Shown piece after piece: positions 6,021 to 54,000 of a stretch of 64,000 nucleotides of DNA. Source of the stretch: Trichosphaerium sp. ATCC 40318 (lineage: Eukaryota; Protista; Tubulinea); contig JALMLS010000075.1 of the NCBI GenBank assembly GCA_038496445.1, positions 124,001-188,000 on the forward strand, read 5' to 3'. The translations under genes were made by a program, and so were the position numbers. The first letter of the stretch is position 1; the number at the start of each line of letters is the position of its first letter. The notes beneath the pieces were generated by a model. That model was not told where the DNA came from and made no database searches. It saw only the letters and a list, made by a program, of their open reading frames with translations.

Positions 6021-7169
6021 ATGGAGGGAAAATACACAAACAATGCTAATCCGAGCATATTTGACCTTGTTGCGCTTCCAAATGAACTAATAGTTCATAT
6101 TCTCAAACAAGGGATTTATACACTTCATTCTGCCCAAACATGTCACTATTTGCGAGATATTGTCCACAACCACGTTGGATATAATGCTATCAGTATTCGC
6201 TGTGTAAGTCAAGTGAACATTCTTTCTGGCAGCCCGTTACTCCTGAATACACCTATTCACGTGCTCTGTCATTCAATACTTGATAAGCACATCAAGATGT
6301 TAGCAGGTGTACATACTATCAACTTAAACACGTGTGAATTGATAACAGATGAGGGTATAAAGGCTTTGGCAGGTGTGCATACAATTGATTTATATGGCAC
6401 AAATGTAACAGATGAAGGTTTGAAGGCGTTGGCAGGAGTACATACAATTGGGTTGTGTCGGTGTGCAGTAACAGATGAAGGCATAAAGGCTTTGGCAGGT
6501 GTACATGAGATTGATGTGTCATGTACAAATGTAACAGATGAAGGTTTGAAGGCGTTGGCTGGCGTACATACTATCAGCATAAACATGTGCGAATTGATAA
6601 CAGATGAAGGTTTAAAGGCTTTGGCAGGTGCGCATACTATAAACTTACATGAGTGTGAGTCAATAACAGATGAGGGCATAAAGGCGTTGGCAGGAGTACA
6701 TACAATTGAATTATCATATACAGATGTAACAGATGAAGGGTTGAAGGCCTTGGCAGGAGTACATACTATAGAACTTGAAGTTTGTGAATTGATAACAGAT
6801 GAAGGCATAAAGGCATTGGCGGGTGTACATACAATTGATTTAGAAAGTACAAACGTAACAGATGAAGGTTTGAAGGCGTTGGCTGGTGTACATACTATTG
6901 ATTTAGAAAGTGAATTGATAACAGATGAAGGTTTAAAGGCATTGGCGGGTGTACATACAATTGATTTAGAAAGTACAAACATAACAGATGAAGGTGTAAA
7001 GGCATTGGCAGGTGTACATGAAATCAATTTATCATACACAAATATAACAGATGAGGGTTTGAAGGCACTGGAGGGTGTTTCTAGAATAATATTGCTTGGT
7101 TGTAATTCAATAACACTTGATTGTATTGCTGCATTGAGAGAGAAAGGATGCACTGTCAAATACCAATAA
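6021..7169 (+). CDS. Intronless F-box-like + leucine-rich-repeat protein (382 aa)
   Basis: N-terminal 'LVALPNELIVHIL' F-box-like motif, then about 11 repeats of GVHTIDLxx(x)xxTDEGLKALA; single uninterrupted ORF. Confidence 0.9.
   Translation: MEGKYTNNANPSIFDLVALPNELIVHILKQGIYTLHSAQTCHYLRDIVHNHVGYNAISIRCVSQVNILSGSPLLLNTPIHVLCHSILDKHIKMLAGVHTINLNTCELITDEGIKALAGVHTIDLYGTNVTDEGLKALAGVHTIGLCRCAVTDEGIKALAGVHEIDVSCTNVTDEGLKALAGVHTISINMCELITDEGLKALAGAHTINLHECESITDEGIKALAGVHTIELSYTDVTDEGLKALAGVHTIELEVCELITDEGIKALAGVHTIDLESTNVTDEGLKALAGVHTIDLESELITDEGLKALAGVHTIDLESTNITDEGVKALAGVHEINLSYTNITDEGLKALEGVSRIILLGCNSITLDCIAALREKGCTVKYQ
6300..7080 (+). repeat. Coding tandem repeat (72/75-nt LRR units)
   Basis: Recurrent 'aacagatgaaggtttgaaggcgttggc(a/t)gg(t/a)gtacatac' with high nucleotide identity between units. 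Confidence 0.95.
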
Positions 7170-7716: not shown

Positions 7717-8591
7717 ATGACAAGCGCTTTGAAATCAAATTGTTGCCGCCTGTTAGACCTTCCACTTGAGCTACAGCTTGATATAATAGATTTAGACTTT
7801 GAAGCTTATTTACGATGGCCTCTTCTATCAAAACACGCAGCAACAACCACAAGGTTTGACGATGAACTAAAAAAACAAGGAAAGTGGATAAAAAGCAATA
7901 AAAAGTACTATTACGACTTTAGACGAAATAAAAGCTGTACGTACTATCAACACAAGGTAAAAGAATCAAAAAAACCCGTTCCTGTTTCCCGTTATTGATG
8001 TCAAATTACTTGTAGGTCGAGAGTACTTTCAGGCATGATTTATATCATGGAGAGTACAAAGAGTGGGATAAATATAACCGACTAAGAAAGCAATGCTCCT
8101 ATATAGATGGTTCTCTTGAAGGTGAGTACAAGACATTTCATGCCAATGGCAAAATGATGGATCGTGGCTATTATGTCAAAGGTAAACAAGAAGGAGACTT
8201 CAAGGCATGGCATGATAATTGGCAACTGCACAGAGAATATCATTGTGTTAACGGGTTGAAGGAAGGAGTGTGTAAGGTTTGGTACAGAAATGGTCAACTA
8301 GAAATGAAGTGTAGTTATCTTAAAGGCAACCAACACGGTGAGTGCAAAAAGTGGCATTATAATGGTCAACTTAGTAGTAAGGCTATGATGAACCATGGCA
8401 CATACGGACTGACCCAAGTATGGGACATGAATGGTCATTTACTTGAGGAAGAAGACTACCACAAAAAATTTCGTACTTGGACATATTGCTTAAGTTGTAT
8501 GCTCATTTGTTTACTACTAGCATTTATGTTGGTTTTGTACGTGATTTTCTCAATCTTAAGCTTTATATGGGGCTATGTCAAACCTTACTGA
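7717..8591 (+). CDS. F-box-like + MORN-variant (MORN_2/YwqK-like) repeat protein with C-terminal TM anchor; 2 exons
   Basis: 'CRLLDLPLELQLDIIDLD..WPLLSK'; intron ~7957-8015; repeats G(E/D)(Y/F)KxWHxNGQL; hydrophobic C-terminal segment CLLLAFMLVLYVIFSILSFIW. Confidence 0.8.
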
Positions 8592-9078: not shown

Positions 9079-11798
9079 ATGATACGTATAGTATTAGTCG
9101 CGTTATCTTTGTTAGCATTAGCCTCAGCTCAATCCCTTGTGCAGTGTAATACAACAACAGTACGTTAACATACTATCATTATTGCGTTATCGCTACAAAC
9201 CGTTGTTATTGAATAACAATGAATACTTTGGCTTTTAATGACTATGAACGTATATTTAAGATATATGGGATGCGTCTAGTATAAATTATCTCGTTGTTCT
9301 TCGCTTCCGGAGGATTTTTATTAACAATTTATTTTTTTGTTATTAGATTGTGACTACTGCTGTGCCAGATGAGTTCTGTACATTCACATGTGAAGTAGCA
9401 CATGCCTTTTGGTTCGAATCATGGCAGACACTCAATGTAGCGGGTACGTCATATCGACGGTTTTTAGACCCAAAGTTGCTGTCGTTTATATTTGTGACGT
9501 TTGAATCGCGTTTTTTTGTTCACGTGTTCATTTTTATTTTGTTTTTTTTGTATTTCAGCGTCTTACTTCGTTCAGGTGCTATGAATATCGATAGACGCTT
9601 TTGGGAGTTTGTCAATGACTTCACTGACGATAATACGCTCACACTTGAGTGTCTTGACAACGGCATTGGTAAGAAAAAAAAAAAAGATACAGAGCCTTTT
9701 CTCGGAGTCTTTTCCTTAAATCTCAATCACATGGATTGCACATAAAATACACACTCGAACTCTGAGTGATGACAGCAACACTGCCACACTAGGAGTATAT
9801 CGAAGAGTCGACTTGTGGTTTTTTTTGGTTTCTTTTAGTTAAGGCACTAAAACTTTTTATCCCTTAAGGCACGCTCAGAGGGAGAATAAAGCCTGTTAAT
9901 GATAATTCTAATAATCCATGGGTATTTGATGTTGTATTCACATTTGCTTTCCTGACTGATTCGGGTTCTCCAGTGCTGTGCGTAAAAACAAGAAATTCTC
10001 GACAATTTTATCTTACCCTTCCCTAGAGAGCTTAGATCCGATGCTTACGTTGGTAATGGTGGATTCGTAGATCCTGCCACATGGAATTTCTTTGTGGCGC
10101 CGACAGGCATTGCTGTAGTGGATGGTAATAGCAAAACGAAAAGCAAGCAAAGGGTTTTGTACTTATTTTACTTTTAGGTGTCGCTATCGCACCACCGGGC
10201 ACTCCATTAGCTGTATGTAGAAAGAAATGTTATACAATTTATTTATATTATTGTAGGGTGCGCGTGTCGTATTCCGTGCTCAAGGTAATGGTCAACCTAT
10301 ACATGACGTACAATTTGGAGTAGGCGGTACGTTCTGGTAGCTAACACAAAAGCACGTGGATGTCACGTGATTTCTGACTTTTTACAGCGAATAACAAGAA
10401 TACTCGTGATGGTCTATCTACATGGCTAAGGCACGTGATTTATTCAGCCATAGAAAAGCTCATTTGAGTGTTTGGTTCAATTATGTGGGGTAAATTTGGT
10501 TTTATTAACACTACTTTAGCTGGATTGTAACGAGTCAACCAACATTGTTTCCAGTCAGCTTACCAAATTCAAACAGTAAATACGATTAAAACAGTCATAA
10601 AACTTATGCTTTGTTTAGGTCAAAGAGGAGATATCAACGTCAATTTTCTACCACTAAGTAATGATACCTCACCAACAATGGTGCCAACCCAAGCCCCTCC
10701 TACAGATGCTCCTACAGATGCTCCAGTAGCGCCTCCAACAGCTCCACCACCTACAGATGCTCCAACAGCCCCTCCACCTACAGATGCTCCAACAGATGCT
10801 CCAGTAGCGCCTCCAACAGCCCCACCTCCCACAGATGCTCCAACAGCGCCACCGCCTACAGATGCTCCAACAGCCCCGCCACCTACAGATGCTCCTACAG
10901 ATGCTCCAGTAGCTCCTCCAACAGCTCCACCTACAGTTCCACCTACAATGACTCCGCCTCCTACAGCTCCACCTACAGCTCCTCCAACGGCTCCTCCTAC
11001 AGCTCCACCTACAGCTCCTCCTACAGCTCCTCCAACTGCTCCTCCAACTGCTCCTCCAACTGCTCCTCCAACTGCTCCTCCAACTGCTCCACCTACTGCT
11101 CCGCCAACTGACGCAGCAACGGAGATGCCAACTGCTCCGCCAACTACAATGGCACCAGTAGCACCTACAACTAGACCACCTGGTAGAGTTCCTTCGTCAA
11201 CATTTCCTCCATTAATGACACGCGCACCTCGTCCACCTCCACCAAAGGAATGGAAAAAACGTGGTATTGAACATACTGTTAAAGCACCTGAGAACGGCAT
11301 AATAATGCTCGCGAAAGCGTAAGCTACACAACTTTTTTGTTTCTTAACCCAATTTCGACTTTCTTCCATTTTATTTCCATTTTGTAGAGATTAATCAATA
11401 TCCGCTGATACAATTATTTTTAGGGATATCACCTCTTGTTCTCCAGAGGTAGCATCAAAAGATGCACTTGATTTAATCTCAGAAAAATGCAACAGGTAAG
11501 TGTTGATTTTCTATCTTTTTTCTTGTGTTAACCTTTGGTGTCAAGCTTATGTCAAGCACAATTGTATTGCTTACACGAATACCCTTCTAAAGAATCCATG
11601 CTTGAAGATTGTTCTGAATTCACATCTACAGCCTCAGATTTTAACTGTGCGTATTTGGGTTTTCTTCTTTTTTCCCTTTTTTTTGCGTTAAACAACCCTT
11701 CATGCTTACGATTCACTAGGTGGTCCTGCCCGTTCATACAAAGAAACTACAGTATCACTATCTTGCGCTTGTAAATGCAGGCACGTTTGGAGGACATA
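9079..11798 (+). CDS. Secreted protein: uncharacterised N-terminal beta-rich domain + Pro/Thr/Ala mucin-like stalk + Cys-rich C-terminus; multi-exon
   Basis: Signal peptide MIRIVLVALSLLALASA; exons join in frame through to the PPTDAPT repeats. The 3' end is ambiguous because a possible GC donor at 11781 would move the stop to about 11909. Confidence 0.7.
10690..11150 (+). repeat. Coding low-complexity repeat (PPTDAPT / TAPP)
   Basis: Runs of cctacagatgctcca and ccaactgctcct; translates as a mucin-like stalk. Confidence 0.95.
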
Positions 11799-47874: not shown

Positions 47875-50796
47875 TCATGATGTCATTGTACGCAATAAAG
47901 GGTATGGTTTATCAGCTAAAAAAGTTGGTATAGCCCCTCTGGAATTATACCGTGGTGTCAAATGTGGTGATGAGTCTCCAGGGTTGAAATAATAAAACAA
48001 GTATTTATCGGCAAAAACTCTATCAAAATCTTGAACATGTTCAAATACACCCTACTAAGAGTAAATAATAAATCAACATCTAAAAGTCTCTAATCACTTC
48101 TGTAATATTACTCAATATGTGAATGGGTGTAACCATTCTCATCGATTAAGATGAGAGCAAACGAAAAATCGGAAAAAAAAGTGTCAGATTTGACATTTTT
48201 GTTTTAATGTGTAGGTAAGTACGTACATGTTCCTGAAAGTATCTACCAATTATTACAGCAGTTAAGCGGCTATCAAGAGATAGTTGTTCAACCATCCAAT
48301 CGACAGCTTCGCTTGCTACAAAAAGGGATAAGTAAAACCGTTTTTTTTTTGTTTTTTAATGATGTAAGGCATGGGTAAATTGTCACGTACCTATGAAGCA
48401 TGATTTGTATAATTTGAACTTATATCTTCTGTTTTCTACTAGAATACCACCTGGACCGTCTTCATTCAAGGCGATAATGAGCTAGAAAAAAGGGAAAAGT
48501 CAGCAAACTTGCTTTGATAAAACCATCAAAGTTAGTTTTAATTGGTTCGTACTGCTCTTTCTATAGCACTAATATCTTTCCTTACAAGCGTTTTTAGCAT
48601 GTGGAACTTAAATAAAGCAATCTAAAAGAACAATTAGTATAAAGAAAACGCATGTAATGAGCGAAAACATCGCTACAAAGAAAACCGTTTCAACAAAAAA
48701 AAAAAAAAGAATGGTCAAGGACGCACTTGTTCATTAATATCTGGGTTCTTTCCGTTGAAATCTAGAATCGCGTGTTAGCTGAAAAAGAAAAACAACACGA
48801 AAATGAAAATAATCAACACAAACACGTGATCCTCACCTCCAACTTTACCAACTAATCTATTATGTGCAAGAACACGATCAATAAGTAAGCTATCAAATCT
48901 CATTGTTTTGTTTGATGTATTAAAAGCAATATAAGTATCAATACCATCATTAGTTGTTACACAACATTGATGTGCTAGAAGAGAAGACTTAATAAAAAGG
49001 CCGAAAAAAACAAGAACAACAAAATCCTATGTTTTTTTTTGTTTTGATAAATCAAGCGTACGATGACTCTTTGAGGCGTAACAAAAAATATCAATGACAT
49101 CTCCAAGGTTAAAACTTCGTATAAGAACAACATCATTATTACTATCTTTTTCTGTTATTGTTAAAGTGCTGTAAGTCATTTTCATTGAAACTGCTCTCCA
49201 AGACTTTCCGTCGCACAATAAAGCTTCAAGTACGGTACCCTTTTAAAATATAATATCAGTACAGTAAATAAAGCAGAATATACAAGCTTGATAAGCGTTT
49301 ACAGTGGCCAAAATAAAGGAAAATCAAAGCTTGAAATGGCTTTTTTGATGCTTCAACGAAAAGAGTCGACGGCAACTCCGGGCTCTTTTGCAACAAAAAA
49401 TGAACGTACAGCTTCCCATTCAGGATACCAAGATACAGTTAAATCTGAAAATGCATGTAATATTGTTTTTATAGCAGCAGCCACTCTTGGTGTAAGCTAT
49501 CACCAAATAGGTAAGTAAAAAGAAAACCTACTTATTAAAGTGTTGTTTACCGTTTCCCTTCCAAAATGCCTTCGCAATGCTTGTGCTACTGACACAGTAA
49601 AGTGAGTAAAATCGCTTCTTTTCATATCGTAAATTCTATGGTACAAGGCTAAATAGCGAACGTAAGTAAGATGGTAAGCAAAACCAAGTTTTTTTGAGTG
49701 ACACTGTTTTCAGAACAGAACTGAAAAGATTCTACATTCTTGACCACGTACATAATCTTCTGTAGATTTTATACATTTCTTCTGGATTATCCAATGTCTT
49801 TAGTAATCCCACAAAGAAATTCTGAAGCTTTCTTACAATATCAGGAATACTAGTAACATTCTAGTGACAAACAGTTAGAATAAAATACTTGTTTTGTTAT
49901 TTGTACTTTAAATAGCTCTACAAATCCACCACTTTTATTCATTATTCTCTGGTACATATCCCTTTATAAATAATAAGTAAATCAAACATTATATAATACA
50001 AGCACAAAATAAGAAAAACGACGAAATGAGAAAATGTCCAAAACTTTTATATTTTCTTACATAGCCATTTTGGGAGTAAAAAAAAAAAGCTTGTTTTCCT
50101 GATGTGTAATTCTGAGTCATTAGAACGTACTCAAAAAGAGCCATTGAATCAAGTTCAGGTAGTTCTGTAATAGTAACGAGTATTTTACGTAAATCAGTGC
50201 GTTGTGCTTGTGTAATATTGAGTAAAGACGAGCGCTCACCTCCGTAAGCTACAGTACGCATTATACTGTAGTTTCGAAGGTTCTTAAAGCAAAATTAGTC
50301 GGAGTCCGAGAAGAAAAAAAACATTTCGAAATAAAACGTCATTTCGTTTTATCTCCGCTTTACAAATATCGGGGTAGCTTACTTTAGCCATGAATAGAGC
50401 TTTATACTTGGTTCTCGTGACAATTGGTATTAAATGATCTTCTAAAGGTACTGGTAGGTTCATACGTTTTAAACCTTCTAAGCTTAGCCTATTACATGCG
50501 TTAGAGCAGTTTTATATCAGTCTTACTAAAAAGAAAGCGAGGACTATTACGTAGTCATTATTATCTATAAAACGCACCTACGAAGGTGATACAATGTGTA
50601 TATTAGGTTCTTTTTAAGTATATCACACCATGGCTTTATTTTAACAGTTTCTTTACGGTTGTTAGTAATATTAACGCTATAACTATCGAGTACCATTTAA
50701 ACGTAGTTTTTGTTTAATAATATGTGTCAAAAGCGATTCTACAGATGTTGTGTCCCTAAATGATGTGACGAGATCACCCCACTCTATAGCTGCCAT
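47875..50796 (-). CDS. SAM-like + globin + PH-like + DEP domain signalling protein
   Basis: Globin: 'ITQAQRTDLRK...FEDMYQRIM...ELFK...LLKTLDNPEEM..IYRRLSLYHRIY...DFTHF...ALRRHFG..LTPRVAAA'. DEP: 'RRYKFKLYKSCFIASEAVDWM...GVFEHV...FADKYLFYYF'. Confidence 0.8.
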
Positions 50797-51039
50797 AGTT
50801 GACGTGTTCCCAAAACAAATTCACAAGTGTGTAATTTAACGTAATTCCTTATTCCGATATCATAAGTCATAGTATGTGAACTAGTCCACTTAACTGAAGC
50901 TCAGCAGAGTTTGTGTCAACAATTTCCTCTTAGCTTATTTGGTCTGTAACTTCTCATATTGAGGCATTTAACAACATTACGCTAGTATTCGTAATACTGT
51001 CATGCTTTATTTCATCAATTTTTCTTTTCAATAATTTGT

Positions 51040-54000
51040 CTAATCCGTTGTCATAATAGGGCTTATCCTCCCTACATCAGGACCAGCTTGTGGTGCTTTC
51101 TTAACAACCAAAAAGTATATGATACCAGCAATAGTTGCTAATACTAGGAGGACAGCTACAGTACCACCTAATGCATAGTAAAGAACAGCATTATCTGATC
51201 CGCTTTTGTTACAGTTATTTCTTAGAATAAGAAACAATTGCTGTTGTCTATGCTGTAGTACTTTATCAAACTCTTGGCATTCACTATGCTCATCTACAAT
51301 AGCTACGTCTTTAAACGTAGGTACTTTATCTGTGCATTGATGCACAAGAACAAGAATCTCAACTCCGCCCTTTTTTGAAATAAAGTTAGACAATTGATTG
51401 TCAAACACTAATGTACTGTACCTCTGATTGACTTTGTGTACTGTCCCCTTTTAACAATGTAATATTAAGAGTAGTTTTACTAAAGTCAGGACAACCTTGA
51501 GTGGTCAAGGTACTATCTGTTACAATACCAACAAAGGTATCAGCGCTAAAAGTCAGATTGCCTTTTAAAAAAGTAAGTGAAGGAAAAACAAATCCATCTA
51601 AAACATACCAAGAATTGTTGTGTTTGAGTTAACAAGAAGAGATAGCCTCACATGCACACTTGTAGGTGTTACCCATGTACTTGCATTACAATATGACGTC
51701 AGTGTTGGCGGTGGCAGCTTACAAGTCTCAGAAGGTGGTGACGCAGGTGGTGAAGTAGTTGGTGTAGCGGCGGCAGGTGACGCTGTAGTAGGAGATTCTG
51801 TCGTTGGTGCCGTAGTGGCAGGCGATGCTACAGGCGAAGTAGTTGGTGCAATGGTGGTAGGTGATGCTGTAGTAGGAGGTTCCGTGGTAGGGGTAGCAGT
51901 AGTAGGCGCCTCTGTAGGTGAAGCTGTAGTTGGTGATTCTGTAGGTGGATCTGTAGTTGGTGCATCTGTAGTTGGAGGATCTGTTGTAGGTGCATCTGTA
52001 GTAGGTGGAGGTGTAGGCGCAGTTGTAGTTGGCGAAGCTGTAGTAGGTGGATCCGTTGTAGGTGCATCTGTAGTTGGAGATGCTGTTGGAGCCACTGGCG
52101 GTATTACGACTTGCACCTAATACAAGTATTCAGCGGGTTGTGAGTATATGATGTTGGTTAGTAAACGTACGTTGACATCATCAATGTAAGCAGTTACGGT
52201 GTTATCGAAATTAATAAAAAACATTTCTATCTGGTTTACTTCACTTGAGCACGAATAACCAGTTGTATCAACTGTGTATTGTTCCCAACCCGTTGACGAT
52301 AATATTATTGGTATATTTGTTGTCTAATATTGTTAGGGTTAGACAATCACGTGACAACTTGTTGTATGATTAAACTGTTTAAAAGAAAAAACAACTTAAA
52401 GTTCAAGATGACACCGTACGTCTGAGCAGCCAGCAAGATTGAAATCAATTTGTAGATTTAATCCCATAGGATTTTCTACGCGTAGATAGAAAGTAAAACC
52501 AGTGATGTGATTTATACTGTAAGTAACTGAATACCTATTGATAAAATTACCTCAAAAAGTAAAAAAAAACACAACTAGTTCGAAAAAACTAGTGTAAGTT
52601 GAGCTCAAAGATGACCTGATTGATTATCATTACATCAACATTAAAAATCAAGTAAAATGTGTTTACGTACAGGAGGTTTAAAAGTTTTATACCACTGACA
52701 AAATCTAAACGAAATAAGACTTAGTACATTGACTTTTTTCTTTGTTGCAAGTGTTTTTTACGTGCCTGTTAGTTTACCGCTTACAGAACCGGTATTACTC
52801 TGTTCCATATTATTAAAGTCATGAGTAAAACCTTGATGATATGATAAGATCCATTCCATTAGAGGAGGTCCCTACAAGTATTTTAAAACAGAAGTTGATT
52901 AAAAGTTATTAAGTACGTCGAGAAGGTTACCCGTTATACTCTCAGTAAATATTTCGGTCGATGAGAATGACCATGGACACGCCTCAGCGCCTTAAAGAAT
53001 TAAATATATGAACAAGTAATGAAGCATGTGTACCTGCTGGTACAGAAGTAGTTGGAAATTGGCCAGAACTCTAAAACAAAAATCAGGAGAAAAAGAACTT
53101 AACAAGAATTGACCGATACCTCAGCGAAATTTAAAGCGCCTATTGTAGCACCGGTAATATTTAAAGAATCTCCTATTAAAGAATTCAATGTGTGTTACAA
53201 TACAGTGAATTGTTTCGACCCAACATACCGAAACTTGAAGTAATCTAAAAATAATTAGAACACGTTTATTTGTTTTCTATAGTTGGGCTTACTCTGAACA
53301 CTGGACCACCTGTGCTGGTATCTGGTGTTTCTGCGTTATCGTACTTATATATGTTATCCATAGTTCTTAACATTCTATACCAGCCTCCAGATAAAAGTAC
53401 TTCGATAGTATCAACACCAACTGAAAAGAAACAAGAATTAGTCAAGTAAACAAAATAACATCCAAAAAAATAGGGTTGACTTTGATGAAGTATTGGATTG
53501 TGATAAATAAAAAGTTGAGTCAAGACCTACCTGCGAAATTGTACGGAGCCACAGTAAAGTCAGTTTCTGATACAGTATCGGAAGTAAACCATATAGCTAC
53601 ATTTTTACCTTCTGTTGGGCAAGGTATCTTACGCATTATTACATCAGCATATCCTCTGTAGAAACCTCCTTTAATAGACTAAAGTTCTTATTAAAAACCA
53701 AAAAATCATGTTTTTGAGCTTTGTTCGTACTGTAAGCAGTCCATCAGACTCATTCATGATAAAAGTAGGGTACTCATCGCCACACTCTGTAGCGATACAG
53801 TAACCAACAACCTTAAAAATGACATAAGAAAGGAAATATGACGAAAAAACCAAGATGTTTTTTTGGTCATTACCATTGCAATTGTGGTTCCGTGTGTTCC
53901 TGTAATATCATAGCACTCTCCACAACTCCCTCCACACTGTAAATCACCAGATGGATTTGTATCAGGGTCATAGCAACGGTTTGTGTCATCTACGATACCA

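Follow-up and report, generated by a model that had tools for sequence, protein, structure and literature searches.

A predicted fusion of a globin with PH-like and DEP modules encoded by an intron-rich gene of Trichosphaerium sp. ATCC 40318

Can a eukaryotic globin be joined in a single polypeptide to modules that dock proteins at membranes, and what would its haem do there? The question is raised by a locus of Trichosphaerium sp. ATCC 40318, a poorly studied marine protist, located on the minus strand of a 64,000-nucleotide stretch of genomic DNA (assembly GCA_038496445.1, contig JALMLS010000075.1, positions 124,001 to 188,000), which is referred to as the window, with position 1 at its first letter. 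An earlier interpretation drawn from the letters of the DNA (the sequence-only reading) had proposed that the exons of this locus are spliced into a globin flanked by a SAM-like N-terminus, a PH-like segment and a DEP domain, and that the product is a gas-sensing adaptor at the membrane. In the chimeric globins known so far, the partner is a reductase, a bacterial signalling output, calpain or cytochrome b5, and the known membrane globins have lipid anchors only. If true, a globin equipped with PH-like and DEP docking modules would represent a new way to place haem chemistry at a membrane or a receptor complex, and would provide a tractable case in which to ask if globins serve eukaryotes as local sensors of gas or redox state.

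The locus was resolved into a gene of 14 exons (E1–E14 in the direction of transcription, Table 1), the product of which would contain, from the N- to the C-terminus, a 66-residue module, a linker, a complete 3-on-3 globin, a PH-like β-module abutting it, a short linker, a DEP domain and a 33-residue tail. The reading frame, derived from three-frame translation of the minus strand and from the reading of the junctions, leads from the ATG at 50796 to the TGA at 47875 without any internal stop, and each of the 13 introns holds in-frame stops or breaks the frame. The region is AT-rich (about 37% G+C), intron-rich eukaryotic DNA, in which the donors of 11 of the 13 introns of the gene follow the pattern GTA[CA], and a CTAAC/CTAAT/CTGAC-like motif is found 12–20 nt 5′ of the acceptor in many of them; the acceptors are pyrimidine-rich, of the TAG/AAG type. 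This tight intron grammar, together with the spacing of the AATAAA signal described below, should aid gene modelling elsewhere in the genome. Splicing of E3–E7 gives the peptide ...LNITQAQRTDLRKILVTI...ALF(E)DMYQRIMNKSGGFVELFK NVTS...YRRL(S)LYHRIYDM...GRET LTPRVAAAIKTILHAF, where the residues in parentheses are encoded by split codons. It agrees letter for letter with the spliced peptide quoted in the sequence-only reading, whose limits for the gene were also recovered, and the stretch KSWRAVSMKMT...SFNLGDV, which that reading had taken for PH-like, proved to be exon E8. A tblastn search with all exons detected no paralogue in the window; the weak match of E9 at 16.07–16.19 kb lies in a non-coding-looking frame.

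The globin part was compared with a profile, A2, built from 19 flavohaemoglobin-type globin domains of E. coli and plasmid records, which share 31–79% identity with E. coli Hmp. Plasmid-borne globins were chosen since the word search for Hmp and the contig scan gave only near-identical enterobacterial Hmp sequences. Searches with single exons were non-significant because the globin exons comprise only 18–50 residues: phmmer against the PDB gave nothing meaningful for E3 and E6, BLASTP of the exons against the globin of E. coli Hmp gave no match, and hhalign of single exons against A2 resulted in probabilities below 1%, although E5 was nonetheless placed as expected. When the filters were switched off, E4 alone, the top scorer of the 14 exons, aligned its segment MYQRIMNKSGGFVELF with positions 28–43 of A2, that is, from Tyr B10 to Phe CD1, E5 fell on positions 69–70 and E6 on positions 97–104, with its His on the F8 column. 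These three placements are colinear.

The ordered chain of E3–E7, with X between the exons, was then aligned locally to A2. With standard gap costs (5.5/0.5 bits), it scored 31.5 bits over positions 22–135, while within-exon shuffles scored 12.8 ± 2.0 bits with a maximum of 24.3, and none of the 600 reached the native score (z 9.3, Gumbel p ≈ 3e-6). Lenient gaps (3/0.5 bits) extended the alignment to positions 3–135 with 36.8 bits, a value reached by two of 1000 shuffles (21.1 ± 4.2). Under the standard gap costs, the reversed chain scored 12.8 bits, an all-helical PPR protein examined in windows reached no more than 15.0, further decoy proteins no more than 17.4, and other parts of the same protein gave 13.9 and 16.4 bits. 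When the exons were permuted, the native order ranked first of 120, and every top order kept E4-E5-E6-E7 colinear. Considering these results, we concluded from the profile match that E3–E7 encode a genuine globin-type sequence, broadly assignable to the F lineage, in agreement with the globin recognized by the sequence-only reading. Eukaryotic 3-on-3 globins as a group belong to the F lineage in this sense (PMC7475203). A DH (RhoGEF) or RGS domain, as in a P-Rex-like DH-PH-DEP arrangement, was also considered for the helical part and was dropped, as the chain and the globin profile align in register and the residues of the haem pocket fall into place.

In the A2 alignment, four of the seven invariant columns are matched, by Tyr120 (B10), Phe134 (CD1), Leu147 (E11) and His175 (F8). 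The changed positions are Gln E7 to Ile, Tyr G5 to Phe, and Tyr124 and Trp120 of the profile to Thr and Ala, respectively. The Tyr B10, Phe CD1, His F8 and apolar E7 that had been read from the letters are all in place, E7 being Ile. The domain is similar to the flavohaemoglobins and the single-domain globins of the F lineage (E. coli Hmp, Vitreoscilla-type) in matching their profile and keeping Tyr B10, Phe CD1, Leu E11 and His F8. However, it is not a flavohaemoglobin, that is, an NO (nitric oxide) dioxygenase of that type, because, in the distal pair Tyr B10/Gln E7 and the proximal triad His F8-Tyr G5-Glu H23 of those enzymes, Gln E7 is replaced by Ile and Tyr G5 by Phe; in addition, the position of Glu H23 is unmatched, and PH-like and DEP modules stand where the FAD/NAD reductase domain would be. 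On the profile evidence, it fits the F (flavohaemoglobin-type) lineage and is not demonstrably a member of the S (sensor) lineage. The introns interrupt the globin at unusual positions, at about B7, CD2, F5 and the GH corner, and atypical intron positions are known in other protist globins (PMC4101818). Androglobin and the multi-globin proteins of Guillardia theta likewise embed globins in larger eukaryotic proteins and show atypical positions of their introns (PMC4101818; PMC13331133), but their partners are calpain/IQ and cytochrome b5.

The altered F-lineage invariants (E7, G5, Tyr124 and Trp120) could also be taken as a sign that the globin fold has lost its haem and ligand chemistry and acts as a structural or interaction domain in a scaffold, as is the case for non-haem globins such as those of RsbR or photoglobin; families of this kind are documented (PMC8717448). 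Against this, an apolar E7 is common among protist globins (PMC4101818), and the four residues with the closest ties to haem binding and the shape of the pocket, His F8, Phe CD1, Tyr B10 and Leu E11, are all retained and stand in register across three exons. Thus, a globin devoid of haem appears very unlikely.

The DEP domain predicted from the sequence can be regarded as a solid assignment. Three consecutive exons, E12, E13 and the beginning of E14, tile the 72-position Pfam profile PF00610 (Table 1) with a summed score of ~49 bits compared with the curated cut-off of 32.7; no exon passes the cut-off singly. The profile coordinates of the three pieces abut, therefore the E12/E13 and E13/E14 splice junctions are also confirmed. 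A match to the Pfam DEP domain was obtained even with the raw open reading frame (ORF) piece around E13 (E = 2e-6). Apart from DEP, the Pfam search of all exons gave no match, so that no enzymatic domain was found on any exon, in agreement with the suggestion of the sequence-only reading that the protein has no enzymatic output. DEP domains, such as those of Dishevelled, RGS7/EGL-10, Epac and pleckstrin, dock signalling proteins to membranes and membrane proteins, and PH-type modules act likewise.

The segment encoded by E8 and E9 abuts the globin directly at the E7/E8 junction, without a linker, and shows an alternating β-rich pattern followed by a helix, in which Phe takes the place of the Trp that is usual in PH domains. 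The language-model look-alikes of E8 (Atlas) included DUF956, Vps36 GLUE, RME-8_N, GRAM, bPH_3 and BBS5, with scores of 0.75–0.81, which are at lead level, and eight of the ten belonged to the PH clan. Neither E8 nor E9 had a match in Pfam or, by phmmer, in the PDB, and E9 had none in Atlas. Thus, the segment is probably PH-like, and the earlier description is retained in part: the look-alikes of E8 agree with it at lead level, while neither exon gave a profile or PDB match. The succession of a PH-type module, a short linker and a DEP domain resembles P-Rex and pleckstrin (PH-DEP-PH), being the order of the first two-thirds of the latter, but here the second PH and the DH are missing, the resemblance of the PH-like module to PH is at lead level only, and it is preceded by a globin. 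The SAM-like N-terminus, in contrast to the other parts, was not supported by any tool, and the label derives from the pattern only: residues 1–66 (E1, E2) had no Pfam match at E≤10, a search of little power with exons of 31–34 residues. E2 (LEDHLIPIVTRTKYKALFM, 50383-50475) gave a 2-bit match to positions 17–34 of the globin profile, in the A/B-helix region, which is probably due to chance; alternatively, the N-terminal module could be a degenerate piece of a globin and not a SAM domain.

The PH-like and DEP parts are held in one frame by the short exon E10, and the donors flanking this exon, GTGAGG and GTGCGT, are the only atypical ones among the 13. As they deviate from the GTA[CA] of the other 11, and a stop follows three codons on if the donor of E10 is not used, the fusion might be an artefact of the gene model, in which case a globin-PH gene would stop at the TGA 48718-48720 after E10 and the DEP exons would form a separate downstream gene. 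However, the intron 5′ of E10 has a branch-point-like GCTAAC motif and a TAG acceptor, and skipping of E10 leads to a frame shift into a stop. E11 needs an upstream donor because a strong intron 3′-end (TACTAAT ... TTTTAG) lies in front of it; the donor of E10 is in frame with it, and a consensus GTAAAG donor of the same phase is also present at the end of E9. Only about 118 nt lie between the alternative stop and the first ATG of the DEP part, and the interval from the PH to the DEP exons is free of AATAAA. On the minus strand, the sole AATAAA downstream of E4 is that at 47846-47841, 29 nt past the final stop, and the AATAAA of the upstream neighbour gene (51006-51011) likewise lies 29 nt past its stop (51040). 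Based on the splice signals and the position of this sole AATAAA, a single gene is favoured: we consider it highly probable from the sequence that the N-terminal, globin, PH-like and DEP parts belong together, and two mis-joined genes highly improbable.

Table 1. Coordinates of the globin–PH-like–DEP gene in the window, its exons, domains, proposed haem-pocket residues and DEP profile matches
Feature	Position	Strand	Description
Whole coding region	47875..50796	-	14 exons, 13 GT-AG introns of 46-216 nt, 491 codons + TGA
E1, E2	50694-50796, 50383-50477	-	residues 1-66, module without assigned fold
E3, E4, E5, E6, E7	50131-50282, 49907-49961, 49752-49860, 49551-49648, 49410-49496	-	residues 67-233, linker and 3-on-3 globin (about residues 90-230)
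E8, E9	49062-49239, 48837-48974	-	residues 234-338, PH-like segment adjoining the globin
E10	48727-48761	-	35-nt linker exon that joins the PH-like and DEP parts in frame
E11, E12, E13, part of E14	48553-48621, 48391-48481, 48227-48315, 47977-48051	-	DEP, about residues 351-458
C-terminal tail	47875..47976	-	NPGDSSPHLTPRYNSRGAIPTFLADKPYPLLRTMTS, about 33 residues, + TGA
AATAAA	47841..47846	-	probable poly(A) signal, 29 nt past the stop
Tyr120	49952..49954	-	B10, from the A2 alignment
Phe134	49910-49912	-	CD1, on the Phe43 column of A2
Ile143	49837-49839	-	E7, from the A2 alignment
Leu147	49825-49827	-	E11, from the A2 alignment
His175	49638..49640	-	F8, proposed proximal haem ligand, on the invariant His85 column of A2
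Phe185	49608-49610	-	G5, from the A2 alignment
E12, DEP profile match			PF00610 positions 1-19, 14.4 bits
E13, DEP profile match			PF00610 positions 21-48, 22.4 bits
E14 (first 25 residues), DEP profile match			PF00610 positions 50-72, 12.4 bits

While the architecture can be read from the gene model and the profile matches, all function is what we infer from it. The explanation we prefer, with an evenly balanced degree of confidence, is that the globin is held at the membrane by its PH-like and DEP modules for the local handling of a ligand or oxidant. In the proposed mechanism, His175 would ligate the haem; with Ile at E7, a distal His is lacking and the iron would be five-coordinate, while bound O2 could be stabilised by Tyr B10. 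Through its PH-like and DEP modules, the globin would be tethered to a membrane or to a partner among the membrane proteins, where it might handle a diatomic ligand or oxidant, for example in O2-dependent removal of NO or in the protection of membrane lipids, and it would be re-reduced by a separate reductase. Thus, the domains of signalling type would serve as address labels, and not as output. The closest parallels of this arrangement are globin X and GLB-26 of C. elegans, which are also membrane-directed 3-on-3 globins without an enzymatic partner domain; they are lipid-anchored, with proposed roles in membrane protection or redox sensing, not in O2 transport (PMC3176823; PMC3520999). Unlike the protein described here, those globins are myristoylated or palmitoylated at the N-terminus, six-coordinate and have His at E7, while the Trichosphaerium sequence lacks an MG start, has Ile at E7 and possesses PH-like and DEP modules instead of lipid anchors.

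Several points weigh against this explanation. The PH assignment is weak, the β1–β2 loop of the PH-like segment has no clear basic phosphoinositide motif, and the membrane binding of the PH-like and DEP modules is a prediction. NO-dioxygenase chemistry is a guess, as the protein has neither Gln E7, Tyr G5 nor a reductase domain. Pfam found no globin match in the single globin exons, either as raw ORF pieces or as exact exons, and both the splicing and the expression of the gene are deduced from the DNA sequence.

A more elaborate possibility is that the DEP domain, and perhaps the PH-like segment, is a lineage-specific assembly tag, by which the reductase-less globin would be joined with putative DEP-tagged flavoprotein reductases and a peroxidase into a membrane-bound, non-covalent ‘split flavohaemoglobin’ or redox hub, or else that the protein is the first eukaryotic haem-globin adaptor that relays the gas state via DEP docking. 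We regard this proposal as unlikely.

The adaptor suggested by the sequence-only reading would work as a haem-based sensor, in which the globin is altered when its haem takes up O2, NO or CO or changes its redox state. Via the direct junction with the PH-like module, this would change what the PH-like, DEP or N-terminal part binds, so that a protein with no enzyme activity would report the gas or redox state to a signalling complex at the membrane. The linker-free contact between the globin and the PH-like module is consistent with such a relay, as are the lack of a catalytic domain on every exon in the Pfam search and the general role of DEP domains as signalling docking modules in RGS7/EGL-10, Dishevelled, Epac and pleckstrin. 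The myristoylated GLB-26, for which redox sensing is proposed (PMC3520999), gives a precedent. Like the protein in question, the globin-coupled sensors HemAT, DosC/YddV and AfGcHK carry the globin N-terminal to other domains in one chain. However, their globins are of the S lineage and their outputs are MCP, diguanylate cyclase, kinase or similar domains (PMC7475203), whereas the Trichosphaerium globin fits the F-lineage profile and is followed by eukaryotic docking domains, and the Pfam search revealed no output enzyme or MCP domain on any of its exons. The partner, the conformational relay and the ligand-dependent switching that such a sensor would need are hypothetical. A sensor-adaptor is a serious but less probable alternative, and the globin parked at the membrane, which follows the same logic as the acylated globin X and GLB-26, would be the simpler explanation and seems to fit the data at least as well.

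In the literature searched, neither the combination of a globin domain with a DEP domain nor that with a PH domain was described, and the partners named in reviews of chimeric globins are reductase, sensor outputs, calpain and cytochrome b5, without PH or DEP (PMC4101818; PMC7475203). A HMMER search with the 59 residues of E8 against the whole library returned only seven giant repeat proteins, with no match to itself and no relative. These seven matches were judged spurious, since the four that were scanned (BspA-type LRR, PPR, DUF4926) reached their scores via many weak stretches. A metagenome match to E8, an 895-residue aconitase-B-like ORF (L098:1133-1192) that shares the nonapeptide GDVIDIFCY, was also rejected as chance and not homology. 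The lack of relatives concerns one exon of 59 residues and does not by itself establish the architecture as unique.

The upstream neighbour of the gene (51040-52116, minus strand) has a Thr/Pro-rich, mucin-like appearance with PTTDAPTT repeats followed by a transmembrane helix and a short tail, and about 240 nt separate its stop from the ATG of the globin gene. Repeat-containing ORFs were also observed on the plus strand in other parts of the window. An intron-free ORF of 382 residues at 6021-7169, which had no identical counterpart in the gene-position collection, consists of leucine-rich repeats of about 24 residues (TDEGLKALAGVHTIDL...), and two ORFs at 8154-8591 and 12526-13110 are built from MORN/YwqK-like repeats (GKQ.GEYKEWHENGQL). 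The long Pro/Thr/Ala repeat ORF at 10606-11322, composed of PTDAPTAPP units, is mirrored by an ORF on the other strand, as is typical of low-complexity repeats. At 14770-15270, ankyrin-repeat-like peptides (GHTPLHWA, DGASPLKLA) occur in split frames, which probably represent another multi-exon gene.

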